Shown: positions 437 through 58,145 of the stretch, in pieces
How positions within the stretch are numbered: position 1 is the first letter of the stretch
Layout: the number at the start of each line of letters is the position of its first letter
Origin: Blastocystis sp. Blastoise
Taxonomy: Eukaryota; Protista; Bigyra: Opalinata
Direction of reading: 5' to 3'
NCBI GenBank assembly: GCA_039096225.1
Contig: JBBPEB010000006.1
Coordinates: 124,001 to 188,000, forward strand
Length of the DNA: 64,000 nt
Translations under genes and position numbers: made by a program
The notes under the pieces: model-generated
What the model was told of the DNA's origin: nothing
Database searches by the model: none
The model's input: the letters and a program-made list of their open reading frames with translations, nothing else

Positions 437-487
437 GAGATAAATCAGCCTATACAGTAGAATTGTTAAAAAGTCAGACAATACAGT
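437..487 (+). repeat. Left terminal inverted repeat (51 bp)
   Basis: GAGATAAATCAGCCTATACAGTAGAATTGTTAAAAAGTCAGACAATACAGT. Contains an internal ATACAGT direct repeat (452-458, 481-487). Starts GAGATAA like maize Mu TIRs. Confidence 0.95.
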
Positions 488-1951
488 CGTTTCCAGAGGG
501 TCCTATGACCCGCGGTATTTTTAACATAATGGCGACTAGAATATAATACAAATATGTTGTAAAATTCCCAGTCAAGAAACTATATGTGTTTTCTACTAAT
601 AATTAATTTTTGCCATATTCGACCTATTTGTTTAAATTTGACTTAAATGGATAGACGGGATATTGACAGAATAGATAAGGAAGTGGAAAATGAGGATTTT
701 ACTCAATATGTTCAACACATTCCTTCCGTCACACTATGGACATTTTGTGTTTTTTTGACCCTATTTCCCGTAAGAGAAACAACAAAATGACTGGGATTTT
801 TTAATCAAAAATACGTTGGCCTAAACTCGAGAAAAGAGTGTCCGCCAACTTGTCAAGTTTCTCTCTTTTTGACGAGAAAAACTTAAAAATAACTCTACAA
901 AATATATTGTTTATTTATATAATCATAGACATTCTAAATATTGACTATTTTACAGTGTTTTATGATTTAAAATGACTGTTTAAAACCAAAAAGACTTTAA
1001 TTTTTTCTCTGAAGTCTATAATTCAGAATGGATTACATGAGTGAGAAGTTTTTAAAATTTGTGTATTCTCTGAGTGATATATTATCATTTCAATCATTCT
1101 CGTCAAGTCCTTTTACAATATAAACCATTATACAGCCTAAATCAACACACACCTAAAAATTTCTTCTTTTTGATTTCCCAAGGAAAAAACAATAAAATGA
1201 CTTGACTTTTTTATTCATAATTTTTTAGCCTAAAGACGACAGCATTCTTTTAGCCAACTACCCTAGAAAGTCAAAACAATTAAAAATTCAAAAAAGAAAA
1301 GTAAAACAGAAGCTCTTGTTTTTGTTTATTGATTATCGTCAATAAACCTGTTTTTAAAAATATGACTTTAGAATATCATTCAGGACTTGATTTATAGTTC
1401 AGGGTATCGTTTTAAGGTTTAAAATAGCTTTTTTAAGAGAATTCATAATTATGTCCTAAACCAAGAGGAGTTGTGCGTTTTTATCATCTCTGTTGTTAGA
1501 CATACTTATACACAACATACTCAGCTTACAAAATTGTTTTTCTTGCTTGTTGTGATTTTCACTCATTTTTGAATATTTGATTTTTAGTTTCAAAAGTGGT
1601 ATAAAGTGTCTATACATGCCTGTAAGAATCGATTTTAATACTATAAAGTCAAAAATATTAAAAAAAAGTGACAGCGAAAAAAGGAGGGAAAATATACTTT
1701 TTTGAATTTCTTGATATTCCCGCAAAAATGATTTTTCTTTTAAGACCTGAAGACACCCATACGCTATTGAGCCTATTGACTTAGAAAATATTTCATTTGT
1801 TACATATTTTTTTTATTTTTATTCTATTTTTATTTGCCTTTATTTTTAAAAATAGAAGCTCATTTTAACTTCAGACTGTTCCCTTGTATGTATATTGCTA
1901 TTTTTTATTCTTTACCCATATTAACATTCTCCCATTCTCTAGCATGTATAG

Positions 1952-2308
1952 GTTCCTGCTCGTCCGTGGTTATAAGAGTCCTCTTCAGTCCATGTCAACA
2001 ACGTCTATGATGTCAAACTGTTTTCAAAGTATATATGTATTTATTTATTTTTATAATTATCTCTTATCTTTTTATTTTTTATATTGCTGTAATATTATAT
2101 GATAAAATACTTATCGTATATTCATTCTATCTATTATTAACTTTCTTTTTTTTTTCTTGAATTAGAATTCTAATTCATTTTATTATTTATTTTCATTATT
2201 TTTATATTTTTATTTATTATTATTTATTTATTTAGGTTGTTTTCTACTGTTTCTGTTGGTTATCTTTCCCTATGACTCAACATCACCAAATTCATTTTTT
2301 TCTATTAG
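1952..2308 (+). pseudogene. Degenerate mini-exon cassette (2 short exons) of the cargo family
   Basis: Higher-GC islands 1952-2028 and 2236-2308, each bounded by TAG| and |GTAT in AT-only flanks. The first reads GSCSSVV... then hits a stop. Confidence 0.4.
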
Positions 2309-2314
2309 GTATGT

Positions 2315-2345
<31 letters not shown>

Positions 2346-2349
2346 TTAT

Positions 2350-6200
<3,851 letters not shown>

Positions 6201-6420
6201 TCTATATTTATATTTTTTTTTCTCTATATTATTATTTTAATTCTTTTTTATTAATTTCATTAATTATCCCTATCTCATTAACTTTATATTTTTCTCTATT
6301 TATTCTCTTTTCATTTTTCCCTCCTATATTTAGCATCGTTTTCTCTTATACATATATTTTTTTTCATACTTATTTTCGTATTATTATATATCCCTTTATA
6401 TTACTTTTCCTCTATATTAT

Positions 6421-6488
6421 CCTTAAGCTTAAATTGGTAAGTTTCAATCAATTTATGATTGAAAACAGGTTCAATTCCTGTCTTAAGG
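6421..6488 (+). ncRNA. tRNA-like cloverleaf element, copy 1
   Basis: CCTTAAG|CTTA-AATTGG-TAAG|TTTCAATC-AATTTAT-GATTGAAA|ACAGG-TTCAATT-CCTGT|CTTAAGG. Stems of 7, 4, 8 and 5 bp, all Watson-Crick. T-loop TTCAATT; D-loop ends in GG. Confidence 0.8.
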
Positions 6489-8396
6489 TCGTTTATATAA
6501 CTATTTTATGTATATATAGGTTTTAATATTCATATTGTATAAGATTTTCAAAAAATATATATTCAGAGAGGTGAAGATCAATTATGTTAATTACTATTTT
6601 TTTCTTTATATGTGTATTTATTTAATCATTAAATGTATTAGTTGTATATAGATGATTCATAGAAACATTCAAAACAGTTTATTCAATACAAAAATATTCC
6701 AACAATTATCAATTACTTAATTAAGTGTATTGTCGAACACAGAATCTTCTCAAAAGATTGTTCAGGAGATTTTATAATGTTTATACGTAAAATATTAGTT
6801 TAGTTCCAAAAAATAATTCTTATTTTTCAAAAATAGATTATCAAAAGATTCTGTGCAATTTTTTTTTCATATGATCAGTGTATCCTTGTACAGTAGAAAA
6901 AAATCATTTAAATACATTTTTGACTTGATAAACAATAAATTAAGAATTTATTCTTGTTAAAAAACAAAATATTTTGAAAATAATACTAAAATCATACAGA
7001 TGACTAATGAAACTATTCATTCATTTACTCTTAACATGATTTAAGACAAGTCATAAAAATGGAGATTCTTTATATTTTATAATTTTTGATTAATTGATAT
7101 CACTGTCATGTTTAAACTTCATTTAGACACTAAATATGCAATATGAGACGTTTCTGTTATTATTGAAAATAAAATATATATTTGAAATAATTTTAGTTTC
7201 ACTAAAAATCACTGAAGATGATTAAACACGGTAAGTAGACAATGAATAAATCATGAATATAACGATTAATGAGATTAAACATTTTTTTGATAAAAAAGTG
7301 ATTTTTGCATTTGTTTTATAGTAAACTATCAACACGATTCTGACTTTTCAATTAAAAATATACAAAATATTATTTTTGCTTATTCATATGCATATTTGAT
7401 AGCTATGAGTCCTTAGTTGATAGAAAAAGTTGTTCTTGAGTAATTATAAAATAATAATTTGATTTGTTTTTGATATTATTGTAACAATAAACATTATTTT
7501 AACTGGAAAACACTCACTCTATACGTTTTGAGTTTATGAAGAGGTTTTAAAAGACTTTTACTTGATTACAATTGTTGACTTAATTGACTTTAAAATGTTT
7601 TTTGTTTCTTTTCAGTCATATTATGATATTAAAATAATTGAAAATCTACACAAATAGATTAAAAAGTTGATATTTCATAACAATTTTGACTCTAGACCTT
7701 TTTTATCATCTTTCTCTTTATTTAATCATTTTATTGAAAGTATGTGACTCAAATTAATACTCTAAATGAAGATTCAGACAATCATTCTGAATTATATGAA
7801 TCACTTTTGTTTTGGGATTAGAAGTCTCAGGGTCTTCTCTATAAGTCTGTATTATAGCCTAGGTTTATTTAAAAAATAAGTTATACTTACAAAGTGATAC
7901 TAAGAATAATTTTGATAATTAACTATAAAAATGACTCTTCTGTCGTCTAAACTAATTATAAAACATTATAATGATAAATAAATATATAATTCTTTAAAAT
8001 AAAACATTTTTTATAGTATTAATAATAATTAGGATAAATTGAAAATAACAATAACAATATCCATTTTCCTCATAGAAATAAAATTTCTCTTTCTCTTTTA
8101 TTCTTAACCATTCATTTTATTTATGATGAAGATTCTCTATATTTAGTAGATATGAGATTATTCATGTTTATTTTCATTATTTCAGCTATATCTTCTAAAT
8201 TCCTATTACACCCTTTTATAACAAAACAAAATCCTACATGACTTATCACATATTTATTTTATTATATCTTATATCATTATAATGATGTATTATTAAATTA
8301 TTACTTTATTTCATATCATATGATACTATTATGATGGTAGGTGTTTGCTGTTTCTTTATATTTTATTTTTTCTACTCTATTCATTCATTTTCTATA

Positions 8397-9030
8397 GTAG
8401 CTGTCTCTGCTTCTTGCTGTGGCTATTCCTGGTCTCCTTAAGTGTTCTGCTCCTTCTTGTGTGTGGTTATGGTTCTCTTATAGGTATATATATATATATT
8501 TCTTTTTCTAATTATTTTTATAGTTATGCTGCTTGGGTCTAGAATGAAGGGAATCAACATGAATAAAAGGTACATATATATCTATATTATCTATTACATA
8601 TTATATAACTAACCCCACTTTATATTTATATAGGAGTAATGTATATATTTATATTTTATTATTCTATATTATTTTATTATATCATATATTATTATATTCT
8701 ACAACTCACTCTATCTTTATATAGGTTTCCATAAGTTCTGTTGCTGTCGTTGTTGGCCAATTGGAGAATGGTTTATAAAAAGTATATATATATATTTAAT
8801 TATATTGTTTTATTCATTATACTATTTATCATATATCTTTTATAGGATGGTTCTTTGTCTTTGATTCCTTGCCTGTCTTGTAATGATTAGAAAAGGTATA
8901 TATTTTTTATTTTATTATTATTTTAAAATGTTATATATATATTATTATTAGTAATACTTAACTAATATCATCTCTTTATATAGGTTGGTTAGGCTTAAAT
9001 GCAAATTAAAGACTGAAACTGTCCTGGTTG
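8397..9030 (+). pseudogene. Degenerate multi-mini-exon cassette (~6 short exons)
   Basis: Repeated TATAG|exon|GTA islands near 8397, 8524, 8634, 8725, 8846 and 8984. No continuous ORF could be assembled. Confidence 0.45.
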
Positions 9031-9336
9031 AAATATTATAAATTAAATATTATATATATTTTATTATATTATTTATTATATGTTTTATTATCTTTTTTTT
9101 ATATATTTATTATTATTGTTTTCTATTATTTGTTTTTATGATTATTTGATAATATTTAATTTGTTTGTTTTGTTATATCGTTTATTATTACACCACAAAA
9201 AGAATAAAAAAAGCCAATAAATGAAAAAATAGAGAATATTTAAAACCATTTTTATTCGCCAATTATTGTTTTAAGGTGCGTCATACTTTTGCACTGCTTT
9301 TCGATTTTATAAAATCACTGAAACTCTGACAAAAAA

Positions 9337-9539
9337 TTTCACTGCTCACCACTGGGGAAACCAAAGCAAAAAAGTCGTTGGACCTTTTGTCAGCTACCCT
9401 TTAAAATTTTTTCACTGCTCCACCACTGGGGAAACCAAACAGAAAAATCAAATAACCTTTTGTCAGCTACATATTTAAAAATTTTCACTGCTCACCACTG
9501 GGGAAACCAAAACAAAAAAGTCGTTGGACCTTTTGACAG
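9337..9539 (+). repeat. Three tandem ~73-bp direct repeats upstream of the transposase
   Basis: TTTCACTGCTC(C)ACCACTGGGGAAACCAAA...ACCTTTTG starts at 9337, 9410 and 9483. Confidence 0.9.
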
Positions 9540-9660
9540 AAACCTGAAAAAATGTCCATAGTGTCATACAAGTATTTTACACATATATAAATATTTTAAT
9601 ATCTAGAGACGTCCTGATAAGGATTCAAGAGTGAATCCGTTAACAAAAACAACTTTTAGC

Positions 9661-10588
9661 ATGTTTAAAAACATTGACCAAAATCAGATTGCCTCTTTGA
9701 TTGAAGAAAACAGTTTTAATGGGTTTTTCAGAGATTATACAAACTACCTATGCATTATCTATAGGAATTTTCTAATATCGTTACTTTTCAACATTCGCCC
9801 TGAATTTGGGTCAAGAGAAGAGATTGAGGTTTTTTTAAGATTATCTGCATATAGTAATGGCTATTCTATGATGATTCAAAGAAGTTCAAAACAATATGTC
9901 AAATACAAATGTCCCATCATGGAATGCAATTACATAATTCAATACAACTTTAAAGATGGAAAATATCACTTAACACACTTCCATCAACATGATACAGATG
10001 TATAAATATATATAATTACAATATTTATTATATTTTACATTAAAATAATATTTTCTATATATACTATCAATTCTCTTATTAATAAAAACTATATTTTTAT
10101 ATATTAACTATTTTATTTATTTAGAAATGTTCGAAATTTACTTCTCACTATATAGAACTTATGAAGGAAAATAGAATAAAACAATCTGTTTGTGACTATT
10201 ATCAAAAACAAATTAATATAACAACTAATAATATACCTATTAATAATGATAATAAAGAAATACCTAATAATAATAATGAACAAGATAGAAATACTATTAT
10301 AGATATAGCTGGTCTTCAACTATTAGAAAAGGAATTAGTTTCTAATCAAATTAAAGAAAATAATAATCATGAAGTGAATATTGATGAATCATTACAATAT
10401 GAAGAAAGAACAGATGATACTCCTTTAACTGAAATAGAAACTGAAATAATTCAGAAAAAAGATCCTATACTTGAGAAAAGAGTTTATATGAGTTCTGAAA
10501 TGGATTTATTATTATATGAGATGCAAAAGAATAATGAAAAAAGAATAAATAATCAAACATTCCCTGATATGTATATAGATGATATATT

Positions 10589-10620
<32 letters not shown>

Positions 10621-13600
10621 TAGAAAAAGAAAAAGAAAATGATTATGAAAATGAGAAAGAAAATGAAGAAGAAAGTGATATTGATATAAACAATAATAGT
10701 CAAGATGATGAAGTATTAATGAATGGGTTTAAAGACAAGGTTAATAATATAACAACTCCTGTACGATCTGTTTCATTGGAATACTTTGAGAATGTTATTA
10801 GTCAAAGTAAAGATAAACCTAATATTAGTTATATTAATACAAACTTTAGATTATTATTTAGAAGTCCATTAAATAGTACATTTGTATATAATTATTTATT
10901 ATGTCATGAAAAATATAAAGGAATGATATCTAAAGATATTATTAATGAACTACATTCATTGTTTCCTTCAATTAATCGACATATAATATATTGTTCTACA
11001 ACGAGGTTTCTTCTAAATGATGATATATCATATTCTTATATACCTCAAATAATAAAACAACTCAATACTAGTAATTCAAATAATAGAGCTTTTTATATGT
11101 TATATAATGGAAAAGCAGTCAATAATAAAATTGATTTTAATACTGTTGATTATACTGATGATATTATTGATGGAAATAATAATAATAAATCATTATTACG
11201 TTGTTGTACCTTAATTGGTGAAAATATTAAATTATTAAATTATTCTCCTCCTGTTATTTTCCTAGATGGAACGTTTATGGGTCTTGGAAGTACTGTTACT
11301 TTAGTTATAACAGGTAATATATATATATTATTATTACTATTTCTATTACTATTACTATTACTATTACTATTACTATTATTATTACTATTACTATTACTAT
11401 TACTATTACTATTACTATTACTATTACTATTACTATTACTATTACTATTACTATTACTATTACTATTACTATTACTATTACTCTTTATAGCTGTTAATAT
11501 CAATCATGAATCCATATGTCTTGGTTTTGGATTCTTTCCATCTGAAAGTGAAGAAGCTTGGGTTACTTTATTATCTTCATTAAAGAAGGTTTTAATGAGT
11601 CAATATGGTAATCAAACATTTACTATTGTTTCTGACCAAGCTAAGGGGATCAAGTCGGCAGTTCAAAAGGTATTTCCTGACTATCCCCATATTCTCTGTT
11701 TCTTCCATTTATTACAAGATCATCTTCGAGTCGACTTACGTACAAAACAATATATTATAGATAGTTATAAAGCTTCTACTTTTGAAGAAGCAAAAGAAAA
11801 AGCAGAAAAGATTATAGATGAAGATCTTAGATGTCAAGTTCTTGAAGTTTGGGAAAAGAATAATAAAAGTTTACAAAAGTATGATTCAATTTGTAAATGG
11901 TATATTTCCTCAAGTGTAGCTGAAAGCTACAATAGAGTATTAAAACGTTTTAGAAATATTCCTATTCATAAAATGTTTCTATGTATCTATAACTATAGTA
12001 TTACAAAACAGATTAATATAAAAACTAGTATTCCTATTGATAATGTTTTCTTACCTTGTTTTGATAATATATATAATAGAATCAAGAATAAGAAGTATTA
12101 TATAAAAGAAAAGAAAGATGGAGTTTCTGCTGTTGTAAATGATGGTGTTAGCTATATAGTAAATTTAGAAAAGCAAACATGTGAATGTAAGGAATACCAA
12201 AACAAACACACTCCCTGTAAACATGCTATAATCTTCCTTAGGTACTTAATAGAAAAAGGAAATAATAATACTGATATTATTCCACGAGTATTAAGAAATG
12301 TGAATAATCAAATTTATAGAAATCAATATCAAAACTATGATGGAGAGTATATATTTATATGTATATAATGATATATATAGTATATATAGTATATAGATAG
12401 TATATAGATAGTATATATATATTATATGGATAGAATATAGATAGAATATAGATAGTATATATAGTATATGTAGTATATATATATATATACTATATAGATA
12501 GTATATATAGTATAGATAGTATATAGATAATAGTAGAATAGTATAAATATATATCCGATAGATTCTATATACTTTCTATATACTATCTATATAATATCTA
12601 TATTCTATCTATATGTATACTATATTCTATCTATATATTATCTATATACTATTTATATACTATCTATATATTATCTATATATTATCTATATACTATTTAT
12701 ATACTATCTATATACTATCTATATTCTATCTATATTCTATCTATATTCTATCTATATTCTATCTTTATATTATCTATCTACTATCTATATATTATCTTTA
12801 TATTATCTATATTCTATCTATATACTATCTATATAATATCTTTATATTATCTATATTCTATCTATATACTATCTATATAATATCTTTATATTATCTATAT
12901 TCTATCTATCTACTATCTATATATTACCTACTAGGGTCACGCCGCAGGTCCGGGGCCTAACGGCACCGGACCGCGGCTGCAATGAATAATAACTGTTTGG
13001 TTTTTATTTACTTTCTTTCCTTTTTATCTATTATATATTATATATTATATATTATATAATATATATTATTTATTAAATATTATCTATAATATGTTACTTA
13101 TTATATATTATATATTATATATTATATATATTATTTTAATAACACTTCTTATACTCTATATGGAGAGTAGCAATCATTTATTGATTGTAATCAGGTTCAA
13201 TTCCTGATATAAGAACTAAATAGATTATTTGAATAGTATCTGAAAAACTAAAAACAATACTTGAAGAAAATAAGAAATCCTTTTTGAATCATTATATTTG
13301 TTATTTATTATTTTTAAAATATATTTTGTATTTATAAATAGTTAAATTACTGTTTTAATTATTATGGAGTTTCTAAAGGTAATAAATTTAGAAATGGGTC
13401 ATAATGTTAAGTATTGAAAAATATTTTTATGTTGTAAAATCATTTTAAATAGATTATAATAAAATAGCATAAACTTATTTTAATCATTTCATAAAACTAA
13501 AACAAATCTAACACAACAAAGTCAACATTCATTTTGACTTTAACGACTTAAACACAAAGTTTTTGAATTAATATTAATAAATTCAATCTAAATAGCATTT

Positions 13601-16600
13601 CTAAACACAAAAGTGTCAACAATATTACTTTTAGAGAGACTTTACCATTTCGATATCAAGTGTATCAAAATAGTTTTAGACATAACTTTCACATAGTATA
13701 GATCTCATTATTTTATTTATTAATTCAAGTTTAATGTCTTGAATCTCTGACTTCAAGATCATTTTTAACACATTTTGAAAGGTTGACACACTTATAATTA
13801 ATTTTAAAAGCTAATATTATAACATTATACTCATCATAACTCTATCAACATAAGAGTCACCATTTTGACACTCTTTATAAACATTTTACATTTGGTCATA
13901 CACTTTGTCAAGTGTATTTTTGTCCTTTCTTTTGATATAATTTAGAATATAATTCATAGTTTGATAAATAAAATATTTTATATTGAATCTCATCCTTTGG
14001 ATAATTCATTTCTACATTTAAAAATATTAATCCCTTTAAACTTGTTTTTAAAAGTCAAAATTTTCATAGTCTAATGAAAACACAATTTTAAAAGAATATA
14101 CTAACTCTTTAAAATTTCTAGACAACTCAAACACATTGTTAATTCACTTTTCAAAAATGAAATTCTCTTATTTTTTAATATGTTGTAGAATTTAGCTTAT
14201 TATATATTAAACTTCTATTAGAATTTCGAATCTCCTATTTTAAGATAATATTTTTTATTTTACAACCTTAAAGTTACTTTTATGAGTTAATACGTTCACA
14301 AAATTATGTAAATATAAATGCGAGTAAACAGAGAAACTCAAAACTTAAATATCTCAATTATTGACAGTTTTAAATCAGTAATACTATACAGTGTTAAAAG
14401 TGACAATAAATGTTTTAAAATTTAATTCAAATATTTAAAAACTTGACACTATTTAACATACTAAGTATTTCAAGAATTATCTTAATAGTCGACACAATTT
14501 AAATAAAAAAAAAAAGAAAAAGAACAAAACAAAAATAGCAAAAGAAAACATTTAAATATAGAATAGCTAAAACGATAACAACAGCATAAATAAATAAATA
14601 ATATAAAGAAAGCAGATAATAGAAAGCTATTAAATGTGAAAAATAATAATAATAATAAGCAAAAGAAAAAGAAAAAGAACTAAAAAAAAAAAAAAAATCT
14701 AAACATAACCATAACACTAAGAGAACCTATATAGATAAAAGATATATATATATAATAAGAGATAGTATAATAAATATATCTAACATATATATATTAAAAG
14801 AAATATTATAAATATTTGTTATATATATATATATATACCTTTAGATACATTTTTATTATTAAAATGAAAGCTAACATTAGGGTGATAAGATCCCCTATTA
14901 GAAAAGACACCTATATATAATATAATAAATGATAAAATATATATAAACAATAAATATATATATATACCTTCTAAAGAAGGAACAGAGGAATCACCATGAT
15001 ATCTTAACTGACTTGAAGAACCTATATATAATGAAAAGATAATTAATAAATCAAAAAAAAAAGAAAGGAAGAAATAAGAATATACCTGTATCATTATTAC
15101 TATTAATCCAAGACTCCATAAGAAAAGAACGACCTATATAAGATAAAAATAATAATAAACTAAATTAAATTTAAAAAGTAGACATACCTTCATCATTAAT
15201 ACGTTCAGCAACTACAACCACAACAGTAGAATAACCTATAAAGAAACAGTAATAGACAAATAATAAATAAAAAAAAAATAATAATAAATGAATGACAATA
15301 TATATATACCTTTAATATCATATGAGCAGTCTACCTGATCACCAACAACATCCATAGCAACATTTACATCAATAAAACAAACCTATATATATAAAAGTAA
15401 AAAAAAAAAATAAATGAATGACAACATACCTTCAACACCACACAGACATCTATTATCAACATCACTGTTAACATGTACAACAACTGAAGAACCTATATAT
15501 ATATAGAAATAATAAAAAAATAATAATAAAATATAAAAAAAAAAATAAATGATTGGTAACATACCATCTATAAAGCAAGAAGAACCTACATCAACACCGA
15601 TATCACTATTGGAATCACTTACAATAACAGAAGAACCTATAAATAAAGAAAAGTTAAAAAAATAAAAACAAATCATTGACAACATACCTTCACAGTTAGC
15701 ATAACAGGCAACACCACCACCACTGCATAATTCAAATAGCATAGAAGAACCTAAAATAATATAATAAATAATTAAAAAAAAAAAAAAATGGAAAAATATA
15801 TACCTTAAAGACCATCATAGCAAGTACCACCAAGACCAAGAGCATACACAACTGGATTTTATTGAGTAGAAGAACCTGATTTTCTTTGAAATATAAATTA
15901 TTTTTTATTTCCAGGCCTCCTCCTGGATGACATTTTGTTGTTTTCAGACATCTTATTTAATAATATAATATACAATTAAGTATTTGAATATGTATTTAAG
16001 AATCCTATTTCATTTGTATTAATAAATATAATAGGGTCTATTTTCAAAATATGCTTCTTTAAACATAATAGAAATAAAAAAAAACCTTAATTTTTTATTG
16101 ATTTTGTTACTAAAGTAATAATTGGGTCATTCTTATTTAAAATCATTTTGGGTACCCAAAAAACATAGTTCTTTACTCTTTTTTTAAATATTTAATTATA
16201 TTGATTGACTGAGTATGTTTTATTTATTTATTTGATATTGTTTAGTTATTATTTTTATATATATTTGTATGTATATATTTATTTATTTAAAATAATACAC
16301 TTTTCTATAGGATTCTTTTGTATTTTCCTTGGTTGTGGTGTTGAAGTGTTCTTGAAGTGGTCTTGGCTGTGTAAAATGGTTTATTTATGATCAGGTATAT
16401 AAATATATTATTTATTTCTTAAGATCTGTTTTTCTTTTTGTTAATTCGTTTTTATTATTTATTATTTTTATTATCAATATTATTTATTTAGTCTTTACAT
16501 ATAATTTATTCTATATATTATTAATAATTTTTATTCTATAGGAAAGAAACTTTAATGGATGTGTTGTGGTCTTCGTTGCTAAATATTTTCCTTCTTTAAT

Positions 16601-16744
16601 CTGTCGTTCAAGGTTATTTTAAAGGTATATATTTATATTTTATTTATTATTTTTATTATTTATTGTTTACATTTTTTTTATTATTTATTTATTTATTTAT
16701 TATTTATTTATTCATTTTTTTTATATGTTTATTTATTTATTAAT

Positions 16745-16777
<33 letters not shown>

Positions 16778-17313
16778 TTATTGTTTATTATTTATTTATT
16801 TATTTATTTATTTATTATGTTTATTTATTGTATATAGGTTTAATATTCTTCTTAGTTTTTTTTTCTTCTTTCTATCTTCGTTCTTCTTCCTTCTTACTTC
16901 TTCCTTCTTCCTCATCTTTCCTACTTACTTCTTCTTCCTTCCTTCTTCTTCCTTCTTCCTTCTTCCTTCTTCCTTCTTCTTTCTGCCTTCTTTCTTTTCA
17001 TTCTTTACTTCTTCCTCCTTCTTCCTTCTTCATCATTCTTCCTTCATTCTTCGTACTTACTTCTTACTTCTCCCTTCTTCTTCACCTTGGTTCTTCATTC
17101 TTCTTCCTCCTTCCTTCTTCCTTCTTTCTTCTTCCCCATCCTTGATTCTTCCTACTTCCTTCTTCCTCATCCTTCTTTCTTCCTTCTTCTTCATCCTTCC
17201 TTCTTACTTCTTCATCCTTCCTTCTTAAACTTCCTCCTTCCTTCTTCCTTCTTCCTTCCTACTTCCTACTTCCTACTTCCTCCTTATTATATATCTATAT
17301 ATATATCTATATC

Positions 17314-17344
<31 letters not shown>

Positions 17345-20276
17345 ATTATTATTATTATTTATAAACTCCCTTTATGCTCTAGAAGGAGAGAAACAATCAT
17401 TATAGATTGTTTTCAGGTTCAATTCCTGACATGAAGTCTTATTTTTCTTTTTCTTTAATATTTTTTACATATTATATATATATATATATTTTCTCTTTTT
17501 TTAAACTTATTTTTATCTCTTTTAGATTATACCTTTTAAATTTTGACATTATATACATATATCTAACTGTTTATAGTTTTTTTAGACTTCCTCTTCTCAA
17601 CAACAGTCACAATGAGAACAAATCCATTTTAACTCAAACAACTAAGTCATCTCAAAACTGCTTGAATCAATTAATATAGACGTCTATGACATAATTTATC
17701 AATTTAAACTGATTTTCAACTCTCAAAAGTAAGCAAACCAAACACACATGTTGACTTTAAAACGTTAAACTCAGTATTAAAAGATAGTTTTTATAGAGTG
17801 GACATAAAACATTGATTTAAACAAAAAGGAGTGGAAATAATTCACTCTTGATACAACTTTACCATTTGACAAAACACTCATCCACAATATTTTTCAAAGT
17901 TCTTTTAGTAAAGTGTTTATATAGACATATAATGTATAAAATGAAAGTCAACTTCTTGAATCTCTTTGTTTAAGATAGTCTTTAAAACATTTTGACAAAT
18001 TGACAACCTTTAACTTGCTATTTAAAGTTAATATTTTAAGAATAAACTTGATTCAGACATGTAAACACAACTGTCATCACCATAACACTTTTAAAGACAC
18101 TTTACCATTTGGTCATACACTTTGATCAAAATATTTTCGTCCCTTCTTTTGACATAATATAGACTGTGTGGTCTAGTTATATGAAAGTGAGGCGGAATTT
18201 TGAATCTCGTCCTCTAAGTCACTCATTTTTACATCTTTGAAAATTAAGACCCTTAGAGTTGATTTTTTAAGTTAATTTTTCTACAGTGTTCCAAAAACGC
18301 GATTTTGCACAAACTGAAGTGAAAATATTTTTTCAATAACTCTCACAACCCTTCACACATCCACTCTTTAAAAATTATTTTCTTTGTACTTTTGATATGT
18401 TGTAGAGCTACTACAGCTGTACACTAATTAATATCTCTAAATTTTTTATTCATAGTCTAAGACTATGTTTTATACATTCTTTTAAATTTGACAACCTTAA
18501 ACTATTTATTTAAAGCTATTATTCATAAAATAGACTTAATACATGATTCTAAACACATATATAAACCCTTTTACTTTTTAAGACACATTTTGTCATTTGG
18601 TCATACACTTTGACCATCATAATTTTGACTCTCCTTTTAACATAGTATAGAGTTATAAGTCTAGTTTACTAAATAAAAGTCATTATATTGAATCTCTCAC
18701 TCTAAGACCACTTAATTCACATTTTTCAAAATTGTGACACTCAAACTCATTATTTTAGGACTTTGTTTTAACTATAGTAGTTTTATGACCTATTGATTAC
18801 TATGATACAATATTAGTCCATTATAAGAAGATCGAAGAAAATATCGATCACTCAAAAATCGTCCTCAGGAGCTCAAAATCGCTACACCTAGGTTTTTAGA
18901 CCTCCTGAATCAGAATATGATGTCAAAATAAGAATCTAAATTTGACCGTTAAGGCCTCACGTGTTCAATATGAAAAAGTATTAAAAAATAGATAAATATA
19001 AAGAATAAACACGGATAACGTATATTGTGGGATTGAGAAAAAATCAAGTTTACCCCATGTTTATTTTCCAATTGTCTGGTCAACAATTTTTATCGGGATG
19101 ATCCCAAAGAGCCAATCAAAAACGACTCAAAAATCATGTTTTCTGTTCTTTTATTAATAACTTTTTAATTATTAATAATATCGCTTAACAAAGTAGACGG
19201 TGCAAAACTACACGTTATATCCTATTGAACTGTGTTTCAACCAAAAGTTAACTCCCCGTAAGTTTAGAGGAGAGGTGTACACAAACTATAGTATATAGTA
19301 GCCAATCAAATGCATTTTCTAAAAACTGACCAATGGGAATTTTTTTGCCTATTTGCTTTATAATAGTAATGATATACTATCTATATACTATCTATATACT
19401 ATCTATATATTATCTATATACTATCTATATATTACCTATATACTATCTATATACTATCTATATACTATCTATATACTATCTATATACTATCTATCTACTA
19501 TCTATATACTATCTATATACTATCTATATACTATCTATATACTATCTATATAATATCTATATACTATCTATATTCTATCTATCTACTATCTATATACTAT
19601 CTATATGTATACTATATACTATCTATATATTATCTATATATTATCTATATACTATCTATATACTATCTATATATTATCTATATACTATCTATACATTACC
19701 TATATTCTATCTATCTACTATCTATATACTATCTATATATTACCTATATACTATCTATATATTATCTATATAATATCTATATAATATCTATATACTATCT
19801 ATAATATCTATATAATATCTATATACTATCTATAGTCTATATATATACTATCTATATACTATCTATATTCTATCTATATACTATCTATATTCTATCTATA
19901 TACTATCTATATATTACCTATATACTATCTATATACTATCTATATACTATCTATATACTATCTATATACTATCTATATATTATAATTCTTAATAGTATTC
20001 TATTTCTATAAATAAATAAATCAATATATATTCTTATTATAATTATTAAAAAAAAATTATATGATATATACTTTATATAGGTTGATTCCATCTACTATAC
20101 TTGATGAAATACCAAAAGTTCAAATATTGAAGCCATCTTATGCAATGAAGAAAAGAGGGAAACCAGTTGTAAATAGAAGAAAGAGAAAGGCTGAGATCAA
20201 CATGGAGAAGAAGAGAAAGAGAATCCCTTATGTGAAGAGAAGTATCCCATTTGAAGACAGAATCGATCTGTTATAA
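9661..20276 (+). CDS. MULE/MuDR-family DDE transposase with SWIM zinc finger; exons 9661-9999, 10125-11313, 11491-12346, 20081-20276 (2580 nt, 859 aa)
   Basis: N-terminal MuDR/FAR1-type Zn ribbon (F.SREE...YKCPIMEC...HQH). Catalytic motifs VIFLDGTF, TIVSDQAKGI...CFFH and VAESYN. SWIM finger CECKEYQNKHTPCKH. C-terminal KRGKP basic tail. All three introns are GT-AG with matching phases and the spliced frame has no stops. Confidence 0.9.
12360..12930. repeat. (CTATATATACTAT)-type degenerate microsatellite, left half of transposase intron 3
   Basis: The same repeat resumes at 19373-19980, on the far side of the Helitron. Confidence 0.85.
12941..12977 (-). terminator. Helitron 3' subterminal GC-rich hairpin
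   Basis: GCCGCGGTCCGGTGCCGTTAGGCCCCGGACCTGCGGC (minus strand), 6 nt before the terminal CTAG. Confidence 0.85.
13147..13214 (+). ncRNA. tRNA-like cloverleaf element, copy 2
   Basis: TCTTATA|CTCT-ATATGG-AGAG|TAGCAATC-ATTTATT-GATTGTAA|TCAGG-TTCAATT-CCTGA|TATAAGA. Confidence 0.8.
13500..14300 (+). repeat. Degenerate ~244-bp tandem repeat array A
   Basis: (T)TGAATCTC-like motif at 13739, 13983 and 14226. TTTAC(C)ATTT motif at ~13640 and ~13885. Confidence 0.65.
14700..15875 (-). pseudogene. Array of symmetric phase-1 mini-exons (G-S-S...E/D/K-G repeats), partly decayed, inside the Helitron
   Basis: Exons 15875-15804, 15750-15688, 15636-15565, 15492-15430, 15382-15310, 15235-15188, 15133-15086, 15021-14968, 14910-14839, then one starting 14726. 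Lengths 72, 63, 72, 63, 73, 48, 48, 54, 72. All are AG|GT...G|GTAT. The first exon has two TAA codons and one exon is 3n+1. Confidence 0.7.
16311..17290 (+). pseudogene. Mini-exon cassette (16311-16394, 16542-16624) followed by a CT-rich terminal tract (~16838-17290)
   Basis: CTATAG|G...AG|GTATA boundaries and an in-frame stop. Same layout as 1952-6200. Confidence 0.45.
17370..17436 (+). ncRNA. tRNA-like cloverleaf element, copy 3
   Basis: CTTTATG|CTCT-AGAAGG-AGAG|AAACAATC-ATTATA-GATTGTTT|TCAGG-TTCAATT-CCTGA|CATGAAG. Confidence 0.8.
17700..18780 (+). repeat. Degenerate ~244-bp tandem repeat array B
   Basis: TTGAATCTC at 17957, 18200 and 18689. CATTTGGTCATACACTTTG at ~18106 and ~18594, also present in array A. 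Confidence 0.7.
19373..19980. repeat. (CTATATATACTAT)-type microsatellite, right half of transposase intron 3
   Basis: Continuation of the repeat that ends at 12930. Confidence 0.85.
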
Positions 20277-22049
20277 TTATATTATACTAAATAATCATCA
20301 TATATAATTATATCTTTATTTATTAATATACAATTTATTCTTTATATGATTAATATCCTTATTTATCTATCATCTATATATATACTAATATAAATAAATA
20401 TTTTATATCTATATACATATATATATATACATTATTCATATCTTCTTTTTATAATACTCATTGTTTTGTTTGTTTATACTGTATCAATATCATCTATATA
20501 TCTATAATCAATATAAATACAATTTAAATATAAAATAGTATATACAATATAGTTAAAAACAATATAAATACATAAGTATAATATATAATATATATTATAT
20601 ATACTCAAAATATATATTCATTTATATCATCATTAAGAAACATTGAATAATTAAAAGACATATATCAAAACTTCATTATGAGGCCTTTTCGAAGTAAAAC
20701 ACATTACATAATCACCTTTACACACACACAATTAAGGGAATCATTCTATAAAAATGTATTAGATTCAGAATAGTATTGATATATTTACATATATATAATA
20801 ATATACAATAGTATAATATAGATAATAATGAACTAAGATTAAGATAAGACAAGCGTTTCACGACTGGCTACGCCAGCCTACGCTTGAGTTTAGATAATTA
20901 TTATCTCTCAATTGTTATATCTTACATTGAATTTTAAAAAATGAATATTTATTCTTATGTTTTTGTTATTCATTTCTGTTTTTATTTTTTTTTAGGATTA
21001 AAACTATTTCATATTTTATAAAATATTATTTCAATTGCTTTTAATTGTTATCTTCTAATCTTAATTTTCAATTTAGTATTTTAAATAATTTAATTCATAC
21101 ATATTGATAATTCTTACTTAACATTCTATATGTTTTTGAGTATTATTTCCTTTTTTTTTTAATATTCTTTTTAGCCATTTTTATTATTGATTATATATAT
21201 TTATTGTTTATCAATGATAATTAATTAACTCTTGTGTTTTATTTTTGATCTTATTTCTATTTCTATTTCTATTTCTATTTCTATTTCTATTTAGTTTTTA
21301 GTTTTCAATATTAATTCACTTTTCTTTGTTATTTCATTTATAACTTTCTATGTATTTTATCAATTCATTTAGTTTTATAAATATTTAGTATTTTAAATAA
21401 TATCAATATGATTATAAAATACTTTTTCTTTTAAAACATATTATTATCACTTATACCCTACCTTTAAATATTTATGTTTTATTTGAATTAGTCTATATAA
21501 TTATTATTGTGAGAAATAGCTTATTCTCTTGTCTAAAAAAATATTATATATTCTTTTTTATTCTTTTCATATATTGTTTTGTTTTATTTTTAAAATATTA
21601 TAATTTTGATATCTATTTGTTTTTTTATATTTTATCCTTTCCTTTTATATATACTATTATATAAATATTTTAGAAATTTTATTATACAGTTTTTCTCAAT
21701 TAATAAATGTTTAATTATATAAATAGTAATCATATCTTGATATTATTTGATAAATATTATAATTTTTCTTTTATTATACTTATTTTAGTTTGAATTATTA
21801 ATACAAAAGTACTCTTAATAATTAAAAGATATTTATTACTTTATATAATAAACAAAAAAATTAGAGTCTTATTTTAATATTTATCATTAATAGAATCTAT
21901 TCGTTTTAAGTAAAAGAGAATATTTATAGAGAAATTATCTTTTCATTATTTAAAATTAATTAATTCAAATTTAATTCAATTTTTATAGTGTTATCAAAAT
22001 CATTCTAGAAATAAGAAATAAAAACTAAAATATAAAACAAAAATTACAT

Positions 22050-23000
22050 TTCATTTCATAACTAAATAGATTTAAATACTTTGGAAACTTTACCTATTAT
22101 ACATACAATATAGCTTCTAAAACAAATAAGTTATCATAAAAAAACTCTAAAAGACTGAACGTTTTTAAATACATATACTCACTTTTATTTTAACTAATTT
22201 TATGCTAATATACACATGTATTGAATTTGTTATTTTAATTTGTAAAAAATAACTTGAATCTCTTTTGTTTAAAGTCACAATTACAAAAAAAATGAGTTCT
22301 TTTGAAAGACAAAAAACATTCTTTAAACAATAATAATTTTGTATTTAGTAACATAAAAACGTATTATACAGTTTTAGAAACAATTAAAATCTTTTTACCC
22401 ATTTTAACACTCCTATCAAACAGTCAACCATGTTTAATTAAACTAATTTTTAATATTTTATATTCTATAATAAGTCTATTTATTATTATTATAAAAAGTG
22501 ACTTGAATCTCTTGACTTAACTATTGTAATTCTAAAAAAATAATTTTTTGAACAACTTAAAATATTTATTTATTGTAGATTTTAATATGAAACACTCTAA
22601 AAACACTCAATATATACTTATTGTAACCATTTTAGAAAAATAGACTCATTTTAACATTTTGGTCAAACACACAACCACCTTTATTTCAAACAATTCTTTT
22701 ATTATTATAAACATTAAACGCTCTAATACTCATTTTTATAAAAAGTGTATTGAATCTCTTCACTTAAGACAGTCAAACAGACAATTCAAAATTATTTTAC
22801 CCTTTAAACTCATTATAAAGTGATAATATTTATAGAATTGCTTTGATATGTGGTTTAGGACATATTTAACTACTTTTTTCAAAATTATGAGTCAACATGT
22901 GCATATATATCATACACTCGTCTAACTTATTTTTGACTAATTTTTTGAGAAATGCAATACATATAAGGTCTAGTTTACAAATATATAAAAATTATTTGTC
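22050..23000 (+). repeat. Degenerate ~246-250-bp tandem repeat array C (same family as A and B)
   Basis: TTGAATCTC at ~22254, 22504 and 22750. CATTTTGGTCAAACAC at ~22656. Confidence 0.6.
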
Positions 23001-23049
23001 AAATATGAATTTGATTTGTCAACTTTCGGAAAATTTTTAGAAAAATGAT

Positions 23050-24200
23050 TTTTCAATTTTCAGTTTTTTAACATGTTATACTATTGACTCTACTGAACTC
23101 ATTTCTTAATTAATTTTAAATGTTAAAATTTATATCGTTAATATATATTATTCTCTATATATATTTGCTAAAATTATATTAAATAATTAAATATTGACTG
23201 AGAAATTAATGTTATAAAGTATACCCTTTTTTCAAAAATTAATTTTTTTATGTTTTGCATATAAATTTTTTTATCTCAAAAGTTATTTTATATTTTGATA
23301 ATATTTTTATAAATATATAAACTATAGGTTGTCTAGTTTATAAATAAGATTTATTTATTTTATTTAAATTAATATTGATGGAGAAATTGTCAAAATAAAC
23401 TATAGTATCCAAAATGCTTTCTTCTTTTTAAACGACTTATTTCACTAATTAAAGACAATTAAAAACAAATTTATTTATTTTAAGCTTATTTATGACATAT
23501 ACAACTCATAAAGACTCATAACTAACTTTTTAAGACAAACATTGTCAGTATCAGTTCAACATGTTGTCTTAACTTTTTCAAATAAGTGATATATAGTATC
23601 CATGAGTGGTTCTAAACACATATTAAACGTTTTAAGAGTTTATTGAGTTGACATTGTCTGGTGATCTGTTGTTAAAGTCTTTTAAAAACAAAGTAAAATT
23701 GTAAAATATGTTTATTTTGGTATGTAGTTTTTAAATATAAAGTCAAATGTCAAATAAAATTGTTAATGATGAAAATATAAACAAAAAACAAATGAAAACT
23801 TTTTAAGAAAATTTTTTGAAAGTCATTTTTTATTGAGTTCAACTATTGACTCTTGTCACCTGAGTTTTCAATTAATTAAAAAAATGAAAAATATGTATCT
23901 GCTATGACATGTCTAGTTTCTAAATATGTTTTAACTTTTTTATTTTATTAAGAATTGATTGAGAAATCACAATAACAAACTATACCCTTTTTTGAAAATT
24001 TTCATTTTTATGTTTTTCATATAAATGAATGTTTCTCAGTCAATATTAAATATTTAGATAAAATAAAAAATATGTATCTGCAATAGCTTATCTTAATTAT
24101 AATTATACTTTTATTTTTAAAAAATACCCAAAACTCAAGGAGAAAGACGAATAACAAACTATACTATCAAAACATCAAAATTTCTATTATCAAATATTTT
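23050..24200 (+). repeat. Diverged direct duplication with ~761-bp offset
   Basis: ACTATTGACTC at 23080/23842, TATACCCTTTTTT at ~23220/23981, AAACTATA.TATC at ~23397/24157. Confidence 0.6.
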
Positions 24201-26248
24201 CTTATTAAAACATATTATTAAAATATAAAACATATTTATGACGGATACAGAGTTAAATAAATACATTAAAGCTCAAATAAGTTTATAAAGAAGGAATGTG
24301 TCGGATATCAGTTTGACTTTTGTTGTTATTTAAAGGAATTATTGTGGTTTCAGAGTAGTTGAGGTCAGTATCATAACAACTGAAACCATTTTAGAGTTTA
24401 TAGTTAGTGATGTGTGTATTGATATGTTGTCAAGTTGTAAATATAAACAAATTTACCCGTCAAAACTATTTATAAGACTAACCCGTCAATAAAAGTCAAT
24501 TTTATAAAAATAAATATAGAGTATGTGAAGTGATATAGGAAAAATAAGAAAACAATAAAAAATGAAAAACGAAAAATAAGTGTTTTTATAATAATGAAAA
24601 ATATTGGATAAAATAAAAATAATCCAATAATTTTGGTTAAAATTTTGTGCGAAAATGGTTTTTTGCATTTTTTAGCCAGAAATTTAGAGTTTTCGAAAAA
24701 TTTCTTTAACAGTCATTTTCAGAATTGTGTTCCGTATTTTATGATGTTATTTTTATTTTATAAAAGTTAATAACAAAGTCAATAATAGTGAAAGTGTGTG
24801 AGACACCGTACGCTACATGAACTAAATTAAGGATATTAATACAAATTATATGATTATATATAAATACCTTTATTCCTCTATTATATTGATCATTTTGTAT
24901 TAGTAGCACAGTTTAATCATCATTGAAACAGAGAAAACCATCTTTCGAAGACCTTTTCTTTTGAAATCAATTGAAGATTACCATAAAGACTATCCTAAAG
25001 ACTACAACCAGTGTTTGAATAAGTGTTTCTAATCAGTTTAATGAAGGAAGGTTCAATCCAGAATAAGTAAAACACCCGCCACTTAATCATTGTCTTCAAC
25101 ATGCTTTGTTTTGATTTAATAAGTAAGTTGATTAGATTTCTACATTGAATCGCAATACAAACTTTGAAAATAAGTAAGTCTATACTTTAATCCATTGGCA
25201 ATGGTGACTTTGACCTACTCTAATACACTTATAATAGCTTTATAAATGCTTATACATGCTTCAAACATGCAAATAACAAAATATTTATATTTTTATACCA
25301 TTTCCCTAACTTTACTTAAAAAAACATTAGTAAATTTTGATTAAATGTTATTTATCTATTCAAAATACCTTTATTAATTATTATTAATTATTTGTTACTT
25401 ATTTACTGCTCTCTAAGCTATGTATTGATCGTTACGCTACTTTTTATATCAAAACTAGGTGGTTTAATGGATTGATGTTATGTTCATATTTGATTTTATG
25501 GTAAATTATGTTATGAATGGTATTCTTAGCTCAAATAATCTTCACACAGATGATAGATGTTCTATATTATGAAGGTGATATTTTTGTCAATTATCTTATT
25601 TTATGAAATTACAAGCTTTATCTGTTGATCAACTGATCAGTAATACTGAATGAAGCTCAAAAATATGTAGTAATTTCTTTTTAGGCATGTAATTAGTAGT
25701 TTTTAAAATTCGTCGTAAGAGAAGAGGCTAATTCTATTAATTTTTGAAGTTATGAGTAGCAAAACCTATTTGAATGTTATACAGTGAACGATTAGAATCC
25801 TATTTTGAAGTTGATTGTGATGATCAGTATTACAGACCTTATAAGAGCAATAGAAACTAAATCACAAAGGTTAAAATTGGATATAAATATGTTTTAGATT
25901 TGAATTAACTACCTTAATTCATTTTAAGTTAATAAAATGAAATGCATTTACAGTTGATTCACTTTAAGAAGTCTATTCAGAATCTTAATGTTTTATTGAT
26001 GCTTAGAATTGTATATAATGAGGAATCAATGAAATATAGTTTATATAGAAAATAATTGATGCATCTAATTAGCAATGTGTTGTGTGTTGGGAAAGATTAA
26101 ATAAAAACATTATAGGAGAGCGACTGACCATATACATAGTTGATTAAATATCTCAAAGTACTATATATCTGTATAATGGAAGAGTAAACGAATATAATAT
26201 ATATAAATAAAAATATTTAAAAATATTTAAAAAAATAACAATAAATGA

Positions 26249-26316
26249 CATTAGATCAGGAATTGAACCTGATAGCAATCCAATAATAATTGCTACTGAC
26301 CATAAACAGTCTAAGG
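26249..26316 (-). ncRNA. tRNA-like cloverleaf element, copy 4
   Basis: Minus strand CCTTAGA|CTGT-TTATGG-TCAG|TAGCAATT-ATTATTG-GATTGCTA|TCAGG-TTCAATT-CCTGA|TCTAATG. Confidence 0.75.
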
Positions 26317-31192: not shown

Positions 31193-31243
31193 ACTGTATT
31201 GTCTGACTTTTTAACAATTCTACTGTATAGGCTGATTTATCTC
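31193..31243 (-). repeat. Right terminal inverted repeat (51 bp)
   Basis: Perfect reverse complement of 437-487. Confidence 0.95.
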
Positions 31244-31253
31244 TTCTTCTTTT
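31244..31253 (+). repeat. Target-site duplication, right copy (TTCTTCTTTT)
   Basis: Abuts the right TIR and is identical to 427-436. Confidence 0.85.
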
Positions 31254-31312
31254 TTTTTTGGATAGTTTTTGTTTTATACCTTTTTGAACACTTTACGAAA
31301 TTAATATAAAGA

Positions 31313-32645
31313 ATGAAGATCATAACTGGAGATGAAACAGGTCTTATAAAGCAAGTTATTATCGAACAAAAGAAAATTCAACGTTGGGGTGTTCAAAATC
31401 GTGAGTTATCTGTAGAGAGAATGCGTTTTTGTGGTCCAAAAGATGATGATGAATCACAACTTGCTGTTGCTTTAAAGTATTTTATTATTATATTCAGCGA
31501 TACAAGTTATTGAATTGTTTGATCTTATAAAAAATATAGAAATGGTTGTATTAAAGTATGGGATATGGATGAAACAAAACTTTTAAGTACTTTAGAGACT
31601 CATTCTCCAAACCCAAAGGGATTAGATATTATCTATGAAGAGAATGATCGTAAGATAATTAGTTGTTCTGAAGAAGGTCATGTTTGTATATTTTCTTTAG
31701 AAACTGATGAATTAGTAAAAGAATTTGATATTGATGGTCCAGTTGCCACTATGCATTTATGTCCTTATAATCATGATATATTTGCTGCTGGAGGGAAAGA
31801 GAATGATTTAAAAGTCTATAGTATTGAGAAGGGATCTTTTATTTGGCGGGCAAAAAACGTACCAAATGATTTTTTAGATCTTCGTGTACCTGTATGGATT
31901 AAAGATTTACAGGTATATTTATGTGTTATATTTATATATGTTATATTAAATATTTATCTATTTATATATGCTATATTTATGTTTTTTATTATAGATTTTA
32001 TATATTTTATATATATTATATATTATATGTTATATATTATATATTATATATTATATGATATATATATATATATATATATATAACTCTAGTTTATGGAATG
32101 TAGTGATAAGGGATATAAGATCATTACTGTAACTGGGTATAATCAGATTCGTATTTATAATACTAGTGTCAAAAGACAACCTATTGAAGATTATGCTGTT
32201 GGTGAGCATGCGTTCGTCACGTGCCGACTCAACAAAGATCAAACGTATCTTTATGTCTCTGATATTATTGGTAGAGTATATATATCTTTATTTTTTATTC
32301 TTTATATTTTTTTTATTATAATTGCAGTTTTATATATATAATACTATTGCTATATACATATACATAATGATTCTTATACATAATATATATATATACTAAA
32401 GGTTGTTGGTTTTAACTTATCAACTCATCGTATATATGGTGTTTTCAAGGGGAATGTGGGGTCCGTGAGGGATATACAATTACATCCCTCTCTCCCGCTC
32501 TTAGCTACCGTGGGCTTAGATCGTATACTGAGAGTATATATTAAGAATAAGAATACTATAAATCTACATATATATCTTTTTAAATGAATTTATATATATA
32601 TATCTATTTTCTACACTTATTACTATATACGTATTTTTATCTAAA

Positions 32646-46879: not shown

Positions 46880-58145
<11,266 letters not shown>

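Follow-up and report, generated by a model that had tools for sequence, protein, structure and literature searches.

Why would a DNA transposon in the genome of a protist carry several small elements that fold like a tRNA? This question is raised by a stretch of 64,000 nt from Blastocystis sp. Blastoise (contig JBBPEB010000006.1, positions 124,001 to 188,000), which we analysed as a whole and refer to as the window. A sequence-only reading of the window had pointed out four cloverleaves of about 68 nt whose four-way junction has no linkers. We recovered all four on the strands and at the positions given there: element 1 at 6421–6488, element 2 at 13147–13214 and element 3 at 17370–17436 on the forward strand, and element 4 at 26249–26316 on the reverse strand. 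Elements 1, 2 and 4 measure 68 nt, and element 3 is 67 nt long with an anticodon-like loop of 6 nt. All four lie within a Mutator-like (MULE) DNA transposon of 30.8 kb (437–31243, forward strand). Judged from their sequence, the elements are tRNA-derived, yet they are not ordinary tRNAs. The explanation that we favour, with belief and doubt in about equal measure, is that they are small tRNA-derived genes, a long-standing cargo of this multi-copy transposon, that would encode a non-decoding tRNA mimic.

What do the four elements have in common? All parts of the cloverleaf that had been described from the letters alone were found, namely a 7-bp acceptor stem, a 4-bp D stem with a 6-nt loop ending in GG, an 8-bp anticodon-like stem and a 5-bp T stem. 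Positions 8 and 9 of a tRNA and the variable loop are absent, as had also been claimed: the D stem of the family is 94% paired when connectors are left out, compared to 56% in the canonical tRNA register. We thus rejected the canonical register for the family, as it fits copy 2 only; the Rfam alignment of this copy follows that register and leaves two bases after the acceptor stem unpaired. Since all four copies depart from the canonical register in the same way, they suggest a single ancestor that was remodelled and then maintained.

The shared fold was also found by methods that differ in what they are given. With single-sequence folding, the cloverleaf is the minimum-free-energy fold of three copies out of four, and their z-scores range from -3.4 to -4.8 (-4.78 for element 1, -3.68 for element 2 and -3.42 for element 3); in element 4, one mismatch interrupts the acceptor stem, and the other three arms fold. 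RNAalifold, given the alignment alone, returns exactly the connector-free cloverleaf. Furthermore, we built an RNA covariance model from the four copies and scanned the window with it. The copies themselves score between 86 and 89.5 bits (89.2, 89.5, 86.0 and 86.5 bits for elements 1 to 4), the next best match in the window scores 17 bits, and nothing credible was found beyond the four. We regard the weak matches at 48944–49000 and 35281–35339 as noise, as they are without a T arm and lie in coding-like sequence. The claim that the family occurs only inside the transposon thus holds within this window, where the covariance model found nothing credible outside 437–31243. As evidence for the specificity of the family, this confinement is weak, because 48% of the window is transposon and copies 2 and 3 do not count as independent.

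The best conserved part of the elements is the T arm. Its 15 nt of stem and loop, including a T loop of 7 nt, are identical in all four copies. This 15-mer occurs exactly four times in the window and nowhere else in it even when up to three mismatches are allowed, where 0.57 occurrences would be expected by chance; a count of four was reached in none of 100 shuffles. In addition to the T arm (15 of 15 positions), the GG of the D loop and the inner part of the anticodon stem are invariant. The acceptor, D and outer anticodon stems vary yet stay paired, and the anticodon-like loop drifts. This pattern, in which the T arm is fixed absolutely, the stems are constrained in shape only and the loop is free, is the one that constraint on a promoter, an elbow and an overall shape would produce. 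The anticodon-like loops of copies 1 to 4 comprise 7, 7, 6 and 7 nt, and the bases on either side of the presumed anticodon are not fixed; in copies 1 and 2, the minimum-free-energy folds shrink the loop to 5 nt. The proposal that the elements are non-decoding agrees with these loops, which have no fixed decoding bases.

Overall, the elements have a GC content of 29–35% and a pairwise identity of 63–78%, and the flanks of the four copies do not align beyond a few bases. Two observations concern their immediate borders. The second base 3' of each element is a C in four of four copies (6489–6490, 13215–13216, 17437–17438 and 26247–26248), where the frequency of C or G on the respective strand is 0.09–0.14. 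Copies 2, 3 and 4 moreover share 7–11 bases just upstream. Because of the conserved C downstream and the shared bases upstream, the functional unit is possibly slightly longer than 68 nt.

Have the stems been kept by selection? The alignment of the four sequences has 68 columns and 24 pairs, that is 96 pair cells. In the connector-free structure, 93 of the 96 cells (96.9%) are standard pairs, compared to 37–46% when the 3' partners are slid by one to three columns. Both sides have changed in 10 of the 24 pairs, whereas shuffles give 4.4 +/- 1.5, and none of 500 shuffles reaches the observed value on any of five measures. Compared pair by pair, the copies differ by three to eight double compensatory changes in the stems and by zero to three changes that break or restore a pair; the double compensatory changes are the more frequent kind in five of the six comparisons, whereas the two kinds are tied in the remaining one. 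The cells that are not Watson-Crick pairs also carry information about the strand. On the tRNA-sense strand, three G-U pairs and three mismatches are tolerated, and no A-C is found. Furthermore, the sense strand folds more stably in three of the four copies. The occurrence of G-U without A-C, together with the better folding of the sense strand, favours an RNA of the tRNA-sense strand as the molecule under constraint.

An old internal duplication of about 1.2 kb within the transposon allows a closer comparison. Its first copy (13147–14414, forward strand) begins with element 2 and is collinear with the second copy (17370–18636, forward strand), which begins with element 3. The blocks from +301 to +1200 have 65–69% identity, with z-scores of 7–31 against shuffles, and in the first 300 nt 3' of the elements a likeness is no longer detectable. 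The two elements have 83% identity with full pairing kept, and they differ by four double compensatory changes, two changes involving G-U and one change on a single side by which a pair is broken or restored. That the elements are under selection, as the sequence-only reading had proposed, is borne out by these comparisons: compensatory changes dominate the stems, and the flanks of the duplicated pair decayed while elements 2 and 3 kept their pairing. From the sequence we infer directly that selection within the transposon lineage kept the elements in shape. We also considered whether the two arms of the transposon arose by a mirror-image duplication, in which element 1 would correspond to element 4, and rejected this, as the flanks of these two elements are unrelated.

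What kind of transposon carries the elements? Self-comparison of the window revealed terminal inverted repeats of 51 bp at 437–487 (forward strand) and 31193–31243 (reverse strand), which are 100% reverse-complementary to each other. They are flanked by an identical direct repeat of 10 bp, the target site duplication, at 427–436 and 31244–31253. The terminal repeats, the flanking direct repeat and a MULE transposase between them together lead us to describe 437–31243 as a Mutator-like element of 30.8 kb; the length of the target site duplication is within the 9–11 bp expected for such elements, and the transposase is of the MULE type. The transposase gene corresponds to the public model WA158_004538 (892 aa), which was located at 647–20273 on the forward strand as five blocks using tblastn with P0001 and Pfam. 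The long gaps between these blocks are introns as drawn by the annotators, in the public model only. The MULE and SWIM domains belong to its core coding block at 9607–12368. Within this block, the open reading frame (ORF) at 10161–12368 (forward strand) is the sole long ORF in the left half of the window. It matches MULE (PF10551, E = 6.4e-16), Transposase_mut (PF00872, E = 5.8e-10) and SWIM (E = 4.1e-5) in Pfam, and its protein is 99% identical to WA158_004538. No stops or frameshifts were seen in the blocks that match the model (0 breaks). By its sequence, the carrier is an autonomous element.

The transposon has relatives in the same genome. Six public transposase models (P0001 and P0003–P0007) on five contigs form one cluster at 90% identity, and the other members are 94–99% identical to the transposase of this window over the aligned parts. 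Six near-identical models on five contigs show that the transposon family is multi-copy and young. The transposon also has a paralogue with 59% identity. The C-terminal block of the model, which sits 7.7 kb from the main block, is present in three of the five other members, and the N-terminal block is also present in two of these three; the large architecture of the transposase model is thus probably shared by several transposon copies. Since the transposon copies are near-identical and the elements are only 63–78% identical to each other, the divergence of the elements must be much older than the current insertions. When the transposase protein was compared to GTDB genomes, no relative was found.

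How are the elements placed relative to the transposase gene? Elements 1–3 are located between the coding blocks of the public transposase model, within its span and in sense orientation. Element 4 is found past the end of the model, on the opposite strand, and points inward from the right end. Much of the remaining interior of the transposon is low-complexity DNA, and nine ORFs inside the element that are not of low complexity gave no significant Pfam match (best E 0.017–0.036, below the curated cut-offs). A tenth scanned ORF just outside the element matched WD40 families, the sole real Pfam matches of the ten.

How close are the elements to tRNAs? For the Rfam tRNA family (RF00005), the gathering threshold is 29 bits. 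When the elements were searched singly with lax filters, copy 2 reached 27.9 bits and copy 1 19.0 bits, and copies 3 and 4 gave no match at E<=10. All copies thus stay below the tRNA threshold. A search of the whole window at the Rfam gathering thresholds gave no match, and the elements indeed appear to be an unnamed family, as no Rfam family was found at threshold and nothing in the searched literature. With default settings, ARAGORN finds no gene in the window. At lowered thresholds copies 1 and 2 appear; copy 4 appears only at 80%, where the window total is 32 calls.

The tRNA origin of the elements is also apparent from a pattern of their 3' half, which we searched against JGI metagenomes. 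All nine loci retrieved are ordinary bacterial or phage tRNAs, and the 3' half of the elements is letter-for-letter identical to that of these tRNAs. The nine tRNAs in turn score 20–34 bits on the covariance model of the elements. These mutual scores, together with those of copies 1 and 2 on the Rfam model, lend weight to the description of the elements as tRNA mimics. With a stricter pattern that includes the inner anticodon stem, no matches were found in GTDB genomes and none in IMG/VR.

On these grounds we favour small genes for a non-decoding tRNA mimic, and their life cycle can be pictured as follows. Each element would encode an RNA of about 68–70 nt. This RNA would keep the upper half of a tRNA, in which the 7-bp acceptor stem stacks on a T arm of the canonical 5 bp, together with the GG of the D loop. 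The core would be rebuilt into a four-way junction without unpaired connectors, and the anticodon arm into a hairpin of 8–9 bp that is unable to decode. The T arm, unchanged in all four copies, would at the same time serve as the internal promoter of a gene of the tRNA type for RNA polymerase III (Pol III), which would let each element be transcribed independently and in either orientation. Its letters equal those of the T arm in the genuine tRNA genes retrieved, and it may fit the promoter consensus. The enzymes that process the ends of tRNAs, which read the helix of acceptor stem and T arm and the elbow rather than the anticodon, would then trim the transcript to the cloverleaf, and the product would be a stable tRNA mimic. 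Its shape, and not the sequences of its stems, would be what matters to the transposon lineage and brings it a benefit.

Several points weigh against this picture. The evidence comes from four sequences in one window, of which copies 2 and 3 are not independent. A run of at least four T begins within 20 nt after three of the four copies, compared to a background of 0.20–0.24; with T at 41% of the sequence, this enrichment is marginal, and the 60 nt that follow copy 2 contain no T run. Judged from the structure, the connector-free junction may prevent the D loop from reaching the T loop as it does in a tRNA. As far as perfect four-way junctions are known, their arms come to lie side by side only where an exchanging strand joins them. 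In addition, elements 1–3 are in sense orientation within the annotated span of the transposase transcript, which fits a release from an RNA polymerase II (Pol II) transcript about equally well. Lastly, the benefit to the transposon would have to come from the RNA, because the binding of Pol III factors alone needs no covariation of stems.

The genes could also be seen more broadly, as an undescribed class of transposon-encoded small RNA: a connector-free tRNA mimic that was selected in the transposon lineage and that engages the tRNA machinery of the host to the advantage of the transposon. We put this forward tentatively and hold it to be rather doubtful. The machinery would comprise Pol III and its factor TFIIIC, RNase P, RNase Z and the CCA-adding enzyme, and the advantage might, for example, lie in shaping long transcripts or in marking chromatin. 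A role of the elements as primers was rejected, as no complement of their 3' ends occurs anywhere else in the window.

As the main alternative to genes of their own, the elements could be cis-acting processing signals in long Pol II transcripts, from which RNase P and RNase Z would cut them out. They would then either yield small RNAs derived from introns or set the ends of RNAs, in the manner of the tRNA-like modules in MALAT1 and NEAT1. These two RNAs are reported to mature via the tRNA-processing machinery (PMC12941219). The sense orientation of elements 1–3 between the coding blocks of the transposase model fits such signals, the orientation of element 4 fits a convergent transcript from the right terminal repeat, and the half formed by acceptor stem and T arm, which those enzymes read, is the best-kept part of the elements. 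However, the long introns come from the public model only, and their repetition in other models is not independent, since the copies of the family are near-identical. On the minus strand near element 4, we found no gene and no Pfam domain that would go with a convergent transcript, and a cut inside the unspliced transposase precursor would destroy this precursor. The elements also have no match to the mascRNA-type model of Rfam (E<=10). Signals of this kind are a possible explanation, though we consider it unlikely.

If the elements had no function at all, they would be decaying relics, such as tRNA pseudogenes, heads of short interspersed elements (SINEs) or captured fragments of organellar tRNAs, that were duplicated by the transposon. 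Mutator-like elements are known to capture host fragments, all elements remain below the tRNA threshold, and their AT-richness resembles that of organellar tRNAs. The organelle genomes of Blastocystis have a GC content of about 21%, and some of their tRNAs are reported to have atypical arms (PMC5203790). Neutral decay, however, breaks stems, whereas here nearly all pair cells are standard and compensatory changes prevail. Likewise, the flanks of the duplicated pair decayed but the elements did not, and all four elements show the same register shift. A body or tail common to all four is also lacking, and the one downstream likeness, between copies 2 and 3, stems from the internal duplication, for which reason we rejected a reading of the family as SINEs. 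Overall, relics seem an improbable account of the four elements.

It is also conceivable that the elements act as DNA, namely as binding sites of TFIIIC that serve as chromatin boundaries or roadblocks, so that any RNA would be irrelevant. The T arm of tRNA-type genes is the main TFIIIC site, and it is the most conserved stretch of the elements, of which four copies are dispersed over 20 kb. Yet a protein-binding site needs no pairing in the acceptor, D and outer anticodon stems, which nevertheless covary, and the tolerance of G-U without A-C points to RNA. We therefore regard binding sites alone as quite improbable, less so only than the remaining two proposals.

For working but structurally odd decoding tRNAs, which might for example read an A/T-rich codon or a stop codon, one could cite the calls of Lys(ttt), Stop(tta) and Ile(tat) by relaxed ARAGORN, and compact tRNAs that decode do exist, such as mammalian mitochondrial tRNA-Ser(UCN) and tRNA-Pyl. 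But at about 77% A+T any triplet in the loop reads as an A/T codon, the loops of 6 or 7 nt have unconserved bases beside the presumed anticodon and can be closed to 5 nt in two copies, and none of the elements passes the Rfam tRNA threshold or default ARAGORN, which makes decoding very unlikely. Least credible of all are DNA cruciforms that would be recognised on extruded or single-stranded DNA during transposition or recombination: a perfect four-way junction without unpaired bases, like a DNA junction, inside a DNA transposon would suit them, but the canonical T loop, the GG of the D loop and the 27.9 bits on the Rfam tRNA model would then be a coincidence, wobble pairs occur on one strand only, and the elements are neither at the transposon ends nor matched by a partner at the inverted position.

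Further features of the transposon lie close to the elements or to the transposase gene. Between 2000 and 6200, about 4.2 kb are almost pure pyrimidine on the forward strand (GC skew -0.76 to -0.84, AT skew about -0.55); this tract includes a (TTC)n array at 5221–6144, and its end lies about 220 nt upstream of element 1. Another CT-rich array, at 16863–17285, stops about 85 nt short of element 3. A CT-rich array and an element may, judged from their arrangement, form an old duplicated unit. Two arrays of an 11-nt tandem repeat in partly inverted orientation, at 12348–12930 and 19372–19983, flank 7 kb in which elements 2 and 3 are found; this segment separates the main block of the transposase model from the last one. 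A unit of about 290 nt occurs three times inside the transposon (13720–14010, 17940–18260 and 18430–18750) and includes a fully conserved core of 19 bases and several similar short motifs. A 73-nt repeat, GC-richer than its surroundings, is present in 2.9 copies at 9331–9539, directly before the coding block of the transposase; it could be a promoter or a protein-binding array.

The surroundings of the transposon are those of a nuclear genome. The end blocks of the WA158_004538 model match 28 of 28 and 64 of 64 positions, and the window is a nuclear locus of Blastocystis sp. 'Blastoise', which comes from the gut of a tortoise. Ordinary host genes occupy its right part, with WD40, RCC1-like and bromodomain/PHD/FYRN/FYRC/DDT matches in Pfam. 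The transposon is inserted in a T-rich tract only about 280 nt upstream of an ORF with WD40 repeats (31523–32080, forward strand; region 31244–32080). The GC content of the window is about 23%, in agreement with the 21–23% of tortoise isolates of Blastocystis (PMC10690189). Tandem and low-complexity DNA is unusually abundant across the whole window, including a very long (TAT)n array at 47200–47510; this is in line with the share of low-complexity DNA of 12% reported for tortoise isolates (PMC10690189).

What would such elements mean for transposons and for tRNA biology? The literature that we searched describes no tRNA-like elements from Blastocystis and none from Mutator-like elements. Provided that the RNAs are produced, they would be a case of a eukaryotic DNA transposon that carries and maintains a small structured RNA of its own, and this would raise the question of what the transposon gains from the tRNA machinery of the host. 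The elements keep the T loop and the GG of the D loop, that is the elbow, whereas every connector of the junction is removed; they thus offer a natural test of which core of a tRNA is needed by enzymes that read its shape. Furthermore, as the elements escape both tRNA finders and Rfam, similar ones would go unannotated in AT-rich protist genomes.

Lastly, we compared the elements to known systems. With canonical tRNAs they share the 7-bp acceptor stem, the 4-bp D stem, the 5-bp T stem closed by G-C, the T loop of 7 nt and the GG of the D loop. Canonical tRNAs, however, have two connector bases between the acceptor and D stems, a single one in front of the anticodon stem and at least 4 nt of variable loop, all of which are absent from the elements, and the 8-bp anticodon stem, the variable non-canonical loop and the GC content of 29–35% set the elements further apart. 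The direction of the remodelling resembles that of the compact decoding tRNAs, mammalian mitochondrial tRNA-Ser(UCN) and tRNA-Pyl, in which a connector is shortened, the anticodon stem lengthened and the variable loop shortened. These tRNAs retain one connector base, a 6-bp stem, a variable loop of 3 nt and a working anticodon loop, whereas the elements have no connectors and a stem of 8 bp.

Non-decoding RNAs with the shape of a tRNA are found in a few long non-coding RNAs (lncRNAs), in viruses and in SINEs. Among these, mascRNA and menRNA from MALAT1 and NEAT1 likewise form a non-decoding cloverleaf that keeps the parts read by tRNA end-processing enzymes, and the elements could in the same way be cut from a long transcript (PMC12941219). 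But mascRNA and menRNA are single-copy, belong to vertebrates and sit at the 3' end of an lncRNA, whereas the elements are four diverged copies in a DNA transposon of a protist. The heads of tRNA-derived SINEs share the origin from a tRNA, the repetition and the tie to mobile DNA, and they keep the region of the internal Pol III promoter, which in the elements is putative. Unlike these heads, the elements have no common body or tail, differ by compensatory changes and ride in a cut-and-paste element.

Small tRNA-shaped units are also carried by viruses. A mouse gammaherpesvirus has tRNA-like genes transcribed by Pol III, phages and giant viruses carry tRNA genes, and some of these units are not aminoacylated. 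As would hold in our case, several small tRNA-shaped Pol III units reside in a mobile or selfish genome; the carrier of the elements, however, is a eukaryotic DNA transposon, and the architecture of their junction is another one. The likeness implies no relation in sequence. On the side of the carrier, the comparison is to Pack-MULEs, which are also Mutator-like elements with cargo other than the transposase between their terminal repeats. To our knowledge and in the searched literature, there is no earlier description of a tRNA-shaped family whose form is kept by compensatory evolution while it resides in a cut-and-paste DNA transposon. The cargo of Pack-MULEs usually consists of decaying gene fragments, whereas the cargo found here is a small RNA module under structural constraint, carried by an autonomous element.

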